Sequence record: NC_042013.1
Strand: one strand, 5' to 3'
Length of the DNA: 64,000 bases
A program made the translations under genes and the position numbers. The notes under the pieces are model-generated. The model ran no database searches and had not been told where the DNA came from. It saw only the letters and a list, made by a program, of their open reading frames with translations. Shown here in pieces: positions 5,391 to 52,163 of this stretch. Position 1 is the stretch's first letter, and each line of letters starts with the position of its first letter.

Positions 5391-5434
5391 TCGTTTCGAT
5401 GATTAAGTTATATATCATCGTCAAATAAAGTCAA
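5391..5434 (-). promoter_or_regulatory. Early promoter with ATCGAAACG leader box
   Basis: TTGACT-N16-TATAAC then ATCGAAACGA and GGAG. Confidence 0.85.
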
Positions 5435-6155: not shown

Positions 6156-6280
6156 TGGTAGGCGCTGTCGGGCTCGAACCGACGACCCTCTGCTTACTGT
6201 TGCCTTAGTGGATTTGCACCACGTATCCCGTTTTGGATCAGGCCAAAGGCAGATGCTCTAACCAACTGAGCTAAGCGCCC
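6156..6280 (-). tRNA. tRNA with 48-nt anticodon-loop insertion; isotype unresolved
   Basis: Acceptor GGGCGCT/AGCGCCT, D-arm GCTC/GAGC, anticodon stem TCTGC/GCAGA enclosing 55 nt, T-arm GTCGG-TTCGAGC-CCGAC, encoded ACCA. Confidence 0.85.
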
Positions 6281-9956: not shown

Positions 9957-10009
9957 TTGACATTATTTTTTAGTAATGTATAACTTAATTATCGAAACGA
10001 ATTAAGGAG
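9957..10009 (+). promoter_or_regulatory. Early promoter with leader box
   Basis: TTGACA-N16-TATAAC, ATCGAAACGA, AAGGAG. Confidence 0.85.
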
Positions 10010-11651: not shown

Positions 11652-11700
11652 CATTATTTTTGAATAGAGTATAACTTAATCATCGAAACGAATTCAGGAG
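11648..11700 (+). promoter_or_regulatory. Early promoter with leader box
   Basis: TTGACA-N16-TATAAC, ATCGAAACGA, CAGGAG. Confidence 0.85.
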
Positions 11701-17547: not shown

Positions 17548-19739
<2,192 letters not shown>

Positions 19740-23879: not shown

Positions 23880-23933
23880 TTGACATTATTTTTGCGTAGT
23901 GTATAACTTAATCATCGAAACGAATTAAGGAGA
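23880..23933 (+). promoter_or_regulatory. Early promoter with leader box
   Basis: TTGACA-N16-TATAAC, ATCGAAACGA, AAGGAG. Confidence 0.85.
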
Positions 23934-24349: not shown

Positions 24350-24403
24350 TTGACATTATTTTTGAATAATGTATAACTGAACCATCGAAACGAATGAAGG
24401 AGA
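24350..24403 (+). promoter_or_regulatory. Early promoter with leader box
   Basis: TTGACA-N16-TATAAC, ATCGAAACGA, AAGGAG. Confidence 0.85.
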
Positions 24404-34018: not shown

Positions 34019-34062
34019 TCGTTTCGATGTTGTAGTTATAACTCAATCAAAAATAAAGTCAA
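34019..34062 (-). promoter_or_regulatory. Early promoter with leader box
   Basis: TTGACT-N16-TATAAC, ATCGAAACGA. Confidence 0.85.
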
Positions 34063-50538: not shown

Positions 50539-50781
50539 TTATTTTCGATATTTTGATTTAGATGGTTGGAAGACATCAACAAGTTTGCCCTCATCAAGTT
50601 TCCCTAGTTCAAACTCAAGTACAATATATCGATGGTAGTCGTAAAACGGTGTGCCGCATTCGTGCTTTTGTTTACGATATTCAGTTCTTGCTTTAATAGC
50701 GTCATTCAATGACGGGAATATCCCTAATTCATATTGATCGTCATATTCTTCATCAGCACGTAAAAGAAAAACACTCGTCAT
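50539..50781 (-). CDS. Small hypothetical protein
   Basis: AAGG SD. Confidence 0.65.
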   Translation of the reverse strand: MTSVFLLRADEEYDDQYELGIFPSLNDAIKARTEYRKQKHECGTPFYDYHRYIVLEFELGKLDEGKLVDVFQPSKSKYRK

Positions 50782-50812
50782 AGTATTACCTTTCGTTAGT
50801 TTCTATAAAAAC

Positions 50813-50837
50813 AAAAAAGCCACCCTAGAGAGGTGGC
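50813..50837 (-). terminator. Terminator after tRNA-Leu
   Basis: GCCACC/GGTGGC stem followed by TTTTTT. Confidence 0.8.
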
Positions 50838-50847
50838 GGCTTTTTCG

Positions 50848-50884
50848 GAACTGATACCGGAGTGATCGAAACGAGGTATCGTTC
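50848..50884 (-). ncRNA. Candidate tRNA-trailer hairpin RNA with loop antisense to the early leader box
   Basis: GAAC-GATACC-[TCGTTTCGATCACTCC]-GGTATC-A-GTTC. Confidence 0.45.
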
Positions 50885-50889
50885 TAATT

Positions 50890-51251
50890 TGGTGTCCCCG
50901 ACCGGAGTCGAACCGGTACTCATTAAGAAACGGATTTTCATACCACTATAGCTTTCGCTACCAAATTTCTTTGTTTGTGGTCTGGACTATACCTTGAACA
51001 TATAGGAATTTACCGTGCGCGTTAATCGCTCTTGCGGGCTTTTCATCCGCGTCGTTTCCTACTTAGTTCCGAACCGTCTAGTCTCTACACCTTCAACGGA
51101 TTTCTCCGAAGCTTGGCTCGGTATTAGCAGTTTGAATTTCTTCAAGTTAAGCCTTCACCGAATTTGATTCGTTCTACTTTAAAGCTTTCGCTTTAAGCAC
51201 TCAAATTTTAATCCATAAGTCCGTCGCGTCTACCAATTCCGCCACGGGGAC
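50890..51251 (-). tRNA. trnL-UAA: tRNA-Leu(UAA) interrupted by a group I intron
   Basis: 5' exon 51251-51217 ends GGACTT; 3' exon 50938-50890 starts AAAATCCGT; spliced loop CT-TAA-AA; class II variable arm; CCA. Confidence 0.92.
50939..51216 (-). mobile_element. Group I intron (IC3-like), 278 nt, no ORF
   Basis: P1 ACUU/GAGU with U-G at splice site; AAATTCGGTGAA, AATACCGAGC, GTAGAGACTA, AAGGTATAGTCC; P3 CGAATC/GGTTCG; terminal G. Confidence 0.92.
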
Positions 51252-51261
51252 ATATTTCTAT

Positions 51262-51546
51262 TTACATCGTTGTATAAAGTCCTGTCTCTCTTTCAAAAAC
51301 TTCTTTTAGATTTTCTGCCTGAATCCCCTCAATCGTCTTTACCACTTTGTATTCCATTTTTCGAATTTTTCCAAATTCAATTACGTATTCGTCGTTTACA
51401 AGCCGAATGATCATTTTCGATGCATTCAAATTGTTCTTCGTTGTTTTGAACTGAACATAGTTGTTACCGATTAGTTCTTGACGAAAACCTGTCATTACGT
51501 AAAAAGCTTTACCGCCAAGGTGTGCATTAAGCTGATTAACGTCCAA
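51262..51546 (-). CDS. Early hypothetical protein
   Basis: Behind early promoter; TTG start with GGAG SD. Confidence 0.75.
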   Translation of the reverse strand: MDVNQLNAHLGGKAFYVMTGFRQELIGNNYVQFKTTKNNLNASKMIIRLVNDEYVIEFGKIRKMEYKVVKTIEGIQAENLKEVFERETGLYTTM

Positions 51547-51563: not shown

Positions 51564-51608
51564 CCGTTTCGATGATTAAGTTATATCAAAAGGTTACGTT
51601 CGTGTCAA
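51564..51608 (-). promoter_or_regulatory. Early promoter with leader box
   Basis: TTGACA-N17-TATAAC, ATCGAAACGG. Confidence 0.8.
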
Positions 51609-51617
51609 CTGGTTTTT

Positions 51618-52119: not shown

Positions 52120-52163
52120 TCGTTTCGATGATTAAGTTATACACTATTCAAAAATAAAGTCAA
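52120..52163 (-). promoter_or_regulatory. Early promoter with leader box
   Basis: TTGACT-N16-TATAAC, ATCGAAACGA. Confidence 0.85.

Follow-up and report, generated by a model that had tools for sequence, protein, structure and literature searches.

A tRNA-Leu(UAA) trailer hairpin of Agrobacterium phage Atu_ph07 carries the complement of the early leader box: a candidate trailer-derived pairing RNA

Organisation of the tRNA-Leu(UAA) locus

The window analysed in this study is a stretch of 64,000 nucleotides that corresponds to bases 62001-126000 (plus strand) of the 490 kb genome of Agrobacterium phage Atu_ph07 (MF403008.1), a giant phage of distant T4 type. On the minus strand of the window, a run of small early genes closes with ORF94 (51546-51262), which is followed by a tRNA-Leu(UAA) gene, a hairpin and then a terminator. 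The features of the locus are given below in the order of transcription, in window coordinates.

51564-51613, minus strand: nearest upstream early promoter cassette, with the box ATCGAAACGG at 51573-51564; drives ORF94 and then the tRNA and its trailer
51216-51251, minus strand: 5' exon of tRNA-Leu(UAA)
50938-51215, minus strand: group I intron of 278 nt in the anticodon loop (Rfam RF00028)
50890-50937, minus strand: 3' exon of tRNA-Leu(UAA), CCA encoded (ARAGORN with introns; exon junction from the DNA joints in relatives)
50885-50889, minus strand: spacer AAUUA between CCA and hairpin, 5 nt, AU-rich and single-stranded
50848-50884, minus strand: trailer hairpin, a 10-bp stem with one bulged A and a 16-nt loop
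50884-50875, minus strand: 5' arm of the hairpin, GAACGAUACC
50874-50859, minus strand: loop of the hairpin, UCGUUUCGAUCACUCC, 16 nt
50865-50874, minus strand: anti-box UCGUUUCGAU, nucleotides 1-10 of the loop, perfectly complementary to the leader box ATCGAAACGA
50858-50848, minus strand: 3' arm of the hairpin, GGUAUC-A-GUUC, with the single bulged A
50806-50847, minus strand: Rho-independent terminator, a GC-rich hairpin (50847-50813) and a U-tract

The tRNA-Leu(UAA) gene is absent from the GenBank annotation and was missed by ARAGORN with default settings; with introns allowed, the program reported a tRNA at c[112890,113251], i(36,278), with an intron of 278 nt. The intron matched RF00028 with 48.9 bits (gathering score 50, E = 2e-11). 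It lies after position 34/35 and has a group I core, and the exons join to a complete tRNA, as in group I intron-containing tRNA-Leu(UAA) genes. The 3' end of the tRNA reads ...GGGGACACCA, with CCA at 50890-50892 (plus-strand coordinates). The intron is optional: intron-less DNA alleles in metagenomes join exactly at 50937/51216 (loci L033-L035 and L046 were examined), and in some runs the intron stretch at ~50995-51074 was replaced by other letters. In L046, an extra ORF of 143 aa lies between ORF94 and the tRNA, and has a weak HNH match below the Pfam cut-offs. Short insertions right after the anticodon were also observed in other tRNAs of the phage, namely, Lys(UUU) (48-51 nt), Tyr (26 nt), Ala (11 nt) and Ser (33 nt). 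These insertions, at window 6156-6280 (minus strand) and genome 323904-324023, 331024-331107 and 335105-335213, are too short for group I introns.

An earlier note on this DNA had placed a bulged 10-bp stem and its 16-nt loop in the stretch that separates the CCA from the terminator, and had read the start of the loop as the exact complement of ATCGAAACGA. Both descriptions were confirmed. RNAfold predicted exactly this stem and loop ahead of the terminator (-28 kcal/mol, z = -3.7), and the hairpin folded alone gave -9.8 kcal/mol (z = -1.9). The complement occupies the first 10 loop bases, and its mean unpaired probability in the predicted ensemble was 0.74. The second hairpin (50847-50813) is a GC-rich stem-loop followed by a U-tract, as is typical of a Rho-independent terminator; its transcript begins CGAAAAAGCCGCCACC and finishes GGGUGGCUUUUUU. 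The terminator is able to terminate in both directions.

The trailer hairpin therefore occupies the place of a 3' external transcribed spacer (3'ETS): the last tRNA of the unit, with its mature 3' end, precedes it, and an intrinsic terminator follows. The early cassettes at 51579, 52135, 52439 and 53585 all point towards the trailer with no strong terminator between, and no plus-strand promoter reading through the hairpin was found. The AAUUA spacer would offer a plausible endonuclease entry site. Elsewhere in the genome, tRNA trailers that end in a terminator mostly have it straight after the tRNA; the trailer of tRNA-Cys also contains a long hairpin.

The leader box in Atu_ph07 and in other phages

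The sequence ATCGAAACGA occurred in 8 copies in the window, against 0.31 expected. Seven copies are located behind promoters, and the eighth is the trailer hairpin. Full boxes in the window's early leaders had been noticed before and were found again, although their number is seven and not six. The seven exact leader boxes are as follows.

52120-52129, minus strand: next upstream early cassette, on the same strand as the trailer
5391-5400, minus strand: +1 to +10 of an early cassette
9991-10000, plus strand: +1 to +10 of an early cassette
11682-11691, plus strand: +1 to +10 of an early cassette
23914-23923, plus strand: +1 to +10 of an early cassette
24384-24393, plus strand: +1 to +10 of an early cassette
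34019-34028, minus strand: +1 to +10 of an early cassette

Genome-wide, ~41 early cassettes with the box at predicted +1 to +10 were collected. The cassette, as seen around the seven promoter copies in the window, follows the order of a AAAATAAT-type upstream element, TTGACA, 16 nt, TATAAC, 6 nt, ATCGAAACGA, 4-5 nt, AAGGAG and ATG. This spacing places the A of the box at predicted +1, and early mRNAs should start with AUCGAAACG. The box is the best conserved block of the cassette, with a mean of 1.66 bits versus 1.40 for the -10 and 1.07 for the -35 element, a box figure that is inflated by the choice of the 41 cassettes on a box match of at least 7/8. The longest perfect match between loop and leader was 10 nt in 15 of the 41 cassettes, 9 nt in 14 and 8 nt in 8. 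In 37 of the 41 leaders, a match of at least 8 nt thus faces an anti-box that is predicted to be mostly unpaired. The complementarity is confined to the box and extends on neither side. The loop bases CACUCC can pair with GGAG, but an extension of the duplex by these bases was rejected, as their position relative to the anti-box does not allow a single uninterrupted helix with the leader. Leaders begun at their own promoter were predicted to be near-unstructured (mean -1.5 kcal/mol).

A separate feature was observed in six of the 41 cassettes, where the bases between the -10 element and +1 (e.g. CTCCTTCA) exactly complement the Shine-Dalgarno region (TGAAGGAG). These cassettes are at genome 191765 (plus), 311940 (minus), 178060 (minus), 179559 (minus), 192187 (plus) and 319015 (minus), all outside the window. 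The resulting hairpins (-7 to -15 kcal/mol) have the box as their loop, and are possible only in read-through RNA and not in RNA from the cassette's own promoter. Folds were weaker when the 5' arms were swapped among cassettes (mean -3.30 vs -2.66 +/- 0.19). At genome 163831-163840 (minus strand), also outside the window, the box is followed by a Shine-Dalgarno sequence and ATG (ATCGAAACGAATTAAGGAGATTATG) without a recognisable promoter. This promoter-less copy hints that the box is read in RNA and not merely as part of a promoter.

The box is not restricted to Atu_ph07. The pattern TTGAC-N16-19-TATAA-N7-8-ATCGAAACG matched 37 stretches in IMG/VR versus ~3 by chance (the size of the collection was guessed), and in nearly all of them a ribosome site and ATG came next. 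In ten further contigs, 31 of the 34 copies of the 9-mer ATCGAAACG were situated ~7 nt past a -10 element, even where the hexamer differed. More than 30 unrelated phage contigs thereby showed the +1 box behind TTGAC-N17-TATAAT promoters (loci L096-L127 and L128-L161, IMG/VR). The box-bearing contigs range from 33 to 51% GC, and two carry an alphaproteobacterial-type tmRNA. In bacterial genomes (596 Gb), the combined box and promoter pattern gave 91 matches versus ~35 expected, which is near chance, and it is therefore not a host promoter feature. The 9-mer ATCGAAACG looks like a widespread phage +1 leader tag. Its wide occurrence at phage +1 positions argues that the box is independent of an antisense partner. 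A literature search for the 9-mer returned primers and unrelated sequences only, and we know of no described counterpart of a recurring +1 9-mer.

A parallel to the trailer hairpin was found in one of the box-bearing phages, the 139.5 kb contig IMGVR_UViG_3300028844_004840 (hereafter G001), whose leaders mainly carry the variant TTATCGAAACGC. The exact complement of this variant over 12 nt, GCGTTTCGATAA, has one copy outside the G001 cassettes, against 0.38 expected genome-wide; the reversed and complement controls gave 0. This copy belongs to a non-coding hairpin inside a tRNA cluster (L091:1494-1521 = G001:C1:20238-20265, plus strand). It runs in the same direction as the plus-strand tRNAs. 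A TTGACG-N17-TATACA promoter precedes it, and a tRNA-like gene (L091:1617-1687; 33 bits in Rfam, missed by ARAGORN) follows ~95 nt further downstream. As in the Atu_ph07 trailer, the anti-box comes immediately after the 5' arm, here in the apical part of the hairpin. Leader position +10 differs in step with the anti-box, A:U in Atu_ph07 and C:G in G001, which is a single cross-phage difference. In the predicted fold of G001, half of the anti-box is paired, and the hairpin alone was no better than shuffles. The expectation of a G001-like match over all genomes tested was roughly 0.06-0.1. No relatives of G001 were found. Seven other box-bearing contigs (G003-G008 and G012) contained no non-coding antisense copy. 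A tRNA 3' end followed by CGTTTCGAT within 30 nt occurred in 83 IMG/VR stretches, which is the chance level, and none of these had box promoters nearby.

Chance expectation and conservation of the hairpin

The 10-mer ATCGAAACGA has 20 copies in the whole genome: 15 at promoters, one leader-like without a promoter and four that were isolated at first listing. One of these four is a cassette with a variant -10 element, so that three truly isolated copies are left, at genome 19205, 112865 (the trailer) and 215135. The copies at 19205 and 215135 are inside coding DNA, and the trailer copy alone is non-coding. The trailer had been regarded as the only promoter-less full copy; this holds within the window and fails genome-wide, where further copies include 19205, 215135 and 163831. 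For the 8-mer core, 39 isolated copies were counted, and only the trailer copy is outside an ORF. By chance, 1.12 copies of the 10-mer are expected per genome (both strands, base composition) and 0.056 in the ~5% of non-coding DNA.

A 10-mer match somewhere in the genome is thus unremarkable. For an exact match that falls in the loop of a non-coding hairpin and runs antisense to local transcription, the chance is roughly 1-5%, a figure that rises once the reader's freedom in the choice of motif is counted. We regard the significance of the match between loop and box as moderate. The 10-bp duplex of anti-box and box was predicted at -12.9 kcal/mol. The mean net gain on cofolding was -3.3 kcal/mol versus -1.7 +/- 0.7 for shuffled loops, in a model in which loop-loop contacts cannot be represented and the stem must open.

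Conservation was analysed in 11 related loci, which were fetched from metagenomic contigs via the flanking proteins. The sequencing runs that matched the phage were DNA metagenomes and a few doubtful metatranscriptomes, and contigs only were used. The hairpin is identical in all 11 loci, intron-plus and intron-less alike, and it is shared by two alleles with C and T, respectively, in the T-loop. The spacer is likewise identical, except for one extra A in an intron-less lineage. This invariance carries little weight because the relatives are only ~5% divergent in this block; at that divergence, 0 changes in 43 nt have a probability of ~0.1.

In the most divergent lineage (L040), 20 of 67 positions changed in the terminator and the ORF80 leader, versus 0 of 43 in the spacer and hairpin (p = 2e-5). 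The stem changes of the L040 terminator are compensatory, and its loop was replaced. We rejected this contrast as proof of selection. In the identity profile, a ~95% block (ORF73, ORF94, tRNA and hairpin) meets a 66-81% block exactly at the terminator, and selection on the hairpin is not proven because this drop in identity fits a mosaic junction. Gene conversion is a further confounder, given the mobile intron of the tRNA: some relatives have the intron, some lack it, and in others an HNH-like ORF comes with it.

Among cultured relatives at a greater distance, the collection contains Sinorhizobium phage Phosso only, and both the box cassettes and the trailer hairpin are absent from it. Phosso is too distant for this purpose (radical-SAM protein 68% identical, GC 49%, tRNA-Leu(UAA) non-orthologous). 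In a blastn search against the phage collection, the intron alone matched. The pattern of the tRNA 3' end had no match in IMG/VR, and one unrelated bacterial tRNA was obtained from the JGI metagenomes. LR756501 was rejected as a relative, as it has the intron in common and a different trailer, and Rhizobium phage B1VFA was rejected as a comparison, as it is not a box phage.

Candidate role of the trailer RNA and alternative explanations

The anatomy of the unit, in which the CCA is followed by an AU-rich spacer, a hairpin and a terminator hairpin with a U-tail, suits a trailer-derived RNA. Our tentative reading, to which we give somewhat less than an even chance, is that the hairpin is the working end of a tRNA 3'-trailer RNA that pairs with the 5' ends of early mRNAs. 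By the layout of the sequence, the upstream early promoters would transcribe ORF94, the tRNA, the hairpin and the terminator. By analogy with the E. coli trailer RNA 3'ETS-leuZ, an endonuclease cut in the AU-rich spacer past the CCA would free a two-hairpin RNA of ~80-85 nt that ends in the terminator stem and U-tail. The open 16-nt loop would present UCGUUUCGAU, which could bind AUCGAAACGA, the first ten bases of ~40 early mRNAs. Pairing at the 5' end would alter the fate of the message, most likely through faster decay or hindered ribosome loading; the opposite possibility is that pairing protects the 5' end. Pairing at +1 to +10 would leave the Shine-Dalgarno sequence uncovered, which makes an effect on 5'-end-dependent decay or at the edge of the ribosome footprint more likely. 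Since the trailer is made from early promoters, a stable trailer RNA would build up and exert delayed feedback on the expression of the early regulon. While sequence, predicted fold, complementarity and unit layout are as described above, we infer the processing, stability, binding and effect of the trailer RNA. The earlier proposal that one RNA silences the whole early regulon was not upheld, as it meets a problem of stoichiometry: ~5 early promoters make the trailer versus ~41 that make its targets.

The main rival, which we consider a substantial possibility, is that the hairpin is structural, serving tRNA 3' processing, protection from exonucleases or as a terminator backup, and that the match between loop and box is a coincidence. 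In favour of a coincidence, ~1.1 chance copies of the 10-mer are expected per genome and three isolated copies are present, and the box is partly self-complementary (UCG-AAA-CGA), its reverse complement sharing 6 of 9 core positions. The antisense copy is missing in most box-bearing phages, and low divergence, together with linkage to the tRNA and the mobile intron, can account for an invariant hairpin. However, any 16-nt loop would do for a purely structural hairpin, and yet the loop sequence never varied in the loci open to comparison; only 0.056 copies are expected in non-coding DNA; most other terminator-ended trailers in this genome have the terminator directly after the tRNA; and the parallel in G001 fits that phage's own leader variant. 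Pairing in cis was also weighed. The anti-box may pair with the ORF94 leader AUCGAAACGG, ~700 nt upstream in the same precursor, thereby bracketing ORF94 and the tRNA, to guide processing or stabilise the transcript, with no control of the regulon. This leader belongs to the nearest upstream cassette on the same strand, no strong terminator intervenes, its box pairs at 10 positions when a single G-U is tolerated, and the problem of stoichiometry is avoided. A 10-bp long-range helix is, however, weak and too short for RNase III, and the ORF94 leader is no different from the 40 others, so that we judge pairing in cis to be unlikely.

The other explanations are less probable still. The box might act at the DNA level as an operator for a phage or host protein, the trailer copy being an extra inverted operator, e.g. 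one that would block transcription where the early unit ends. Positions +1 to +10 are a classic repressor site, and the same placement recurs in more than 30 unrelated phage contigs, but the trailer copy sits within a 10-bp inverted repeat, which speaks for an RNA hairpin, the transcription unit is already ended by a terminator, the promoter-less cassette keeps box and Shine-Dalgarno sequence, which suggests reading in RNA, and no candidate protein is known; we therefore hold an operator to be very improbable. Equally improbable in our view is a protein-binding RNA element, e.g. for the phage Ro60 homologue or a tRNA-modifying or tRNA-processing enzyme. The bulged stem with its large loop resembles protein-binding stems, and the loop holds a T-loop-like UUCGAUC; against this, a permissive Rfam scan of 50700-51400 gave no Y-RNA/YrlA or other relevant match at E <= 1, and a 16-nt loop is not a T-arm. 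Finally, GenBank annotates a CDS of 38 aa here (AUZ94936, window 50825-50941, minus strand). This CDS overlaps the 3' exon of the tRNA, the hairpin and half of the terminator, and its ATG straddles the intron-exon junction and is missing in intron-less relatives (GACTTAAAATCC). AUZ94936 is almost certainly spurious.

The trailer RNA proposed here can be compared with known systems. In E. coli, 3'ETS-leuZ is a tRNA-Leu trailer that is released by RNase E and base-pairs in trans with other RNAs (bioRxiv 10.1101/2021.04.25.441314). As in the glyW-cysT-leuZ precursor, from which 3'ETS-leuZ derives, the candidate RNA of Atu_ph07 is located between the CCA of a tRNA-Leu and the terminator of the operon, and its output would be tied to the transcription and processing of a tRNA. 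In contrast, 3'ETS-leuZ is a sponge of the host sRNAs RyhB and RybB, whereas the candidate partners of the phage trailer are the 5' ends of ~40 phage mRNAs; the complementary sequences found here are mRNA 5' ends and not sponged sRNAs. Atu_ph07 also differs in an extra hairpin that displays the pairing bases in a loop. The trailer candidate would thus work like a 3'ETS-derived pairing RNA and not like an sRNA sponge, although the evidence is circumstantial.

Pairing bases are displayed in hairpin loops by plasmid antisense RNAs, such as CopA/CopT of R1 and RNA I/RNA II of ColE1. The trailer hairpin resembles these RNAs in its loop display, and the box itself forms the loop in the read-through RNA of some cassettes, which makes a loop-loop 'kiss' conceivable. 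The plasmid RNAs are encoded opposite a single target and are fully complementary to it, whereas the RNA of Atu_ph07 is encoded elsewhere, offers 10 nt and would have many targets. In T4, the stable RNAs of the tRNA cluster (species 1 and 2 / rnaC, rnaD) are co-transcribed with tRNAs and matured by the tRNA-processing machinery. They resemble the candidate of Atu_ph07 as phage small RNAs co-transcribed with tRNAs; to our knowledge, no target or function of species 1 and 2 has been established, and no complementarity to early leaders has been reported. Strong early promoters of phages, e.g. T5, have conserved transcribed regions, and promoter/stem-loop cassettes are found in T4-type phages. The box of Atu_ph07 is similar in that it belongs to an early promoter-leader cassette present in many copies, in which no other block is better conserved. 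It differs from the T5-type regions in its 9-mer, which more than 30 unrelated phage contigs share at +1.

A wider proposal, which we put forward as speculative and rather doubtful, is that lytic phages with a fixed 5' tag also encode a 'mirror' RNA, matured by the tRNA machinery, which would set the lifetime or translation of the early regulon. On this proposal, the mirror RNA would come from a 3' trailer in Atu_ph07 and from a 5' leader in G001, and would constitute an undescribed RNA-only timing switch coupled to tRNA maturation. If the preferred reading of the trailer as a pairing RNA is true, the trailer RNA would provide a one-molecule handle on the whole early regulon, and regulators derived from tRNA spacers would extend from bacteria to phages. 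The +1 tag that recurs across unrelated phages is a regularity in promoter-leader design that needs an explanation of its own.
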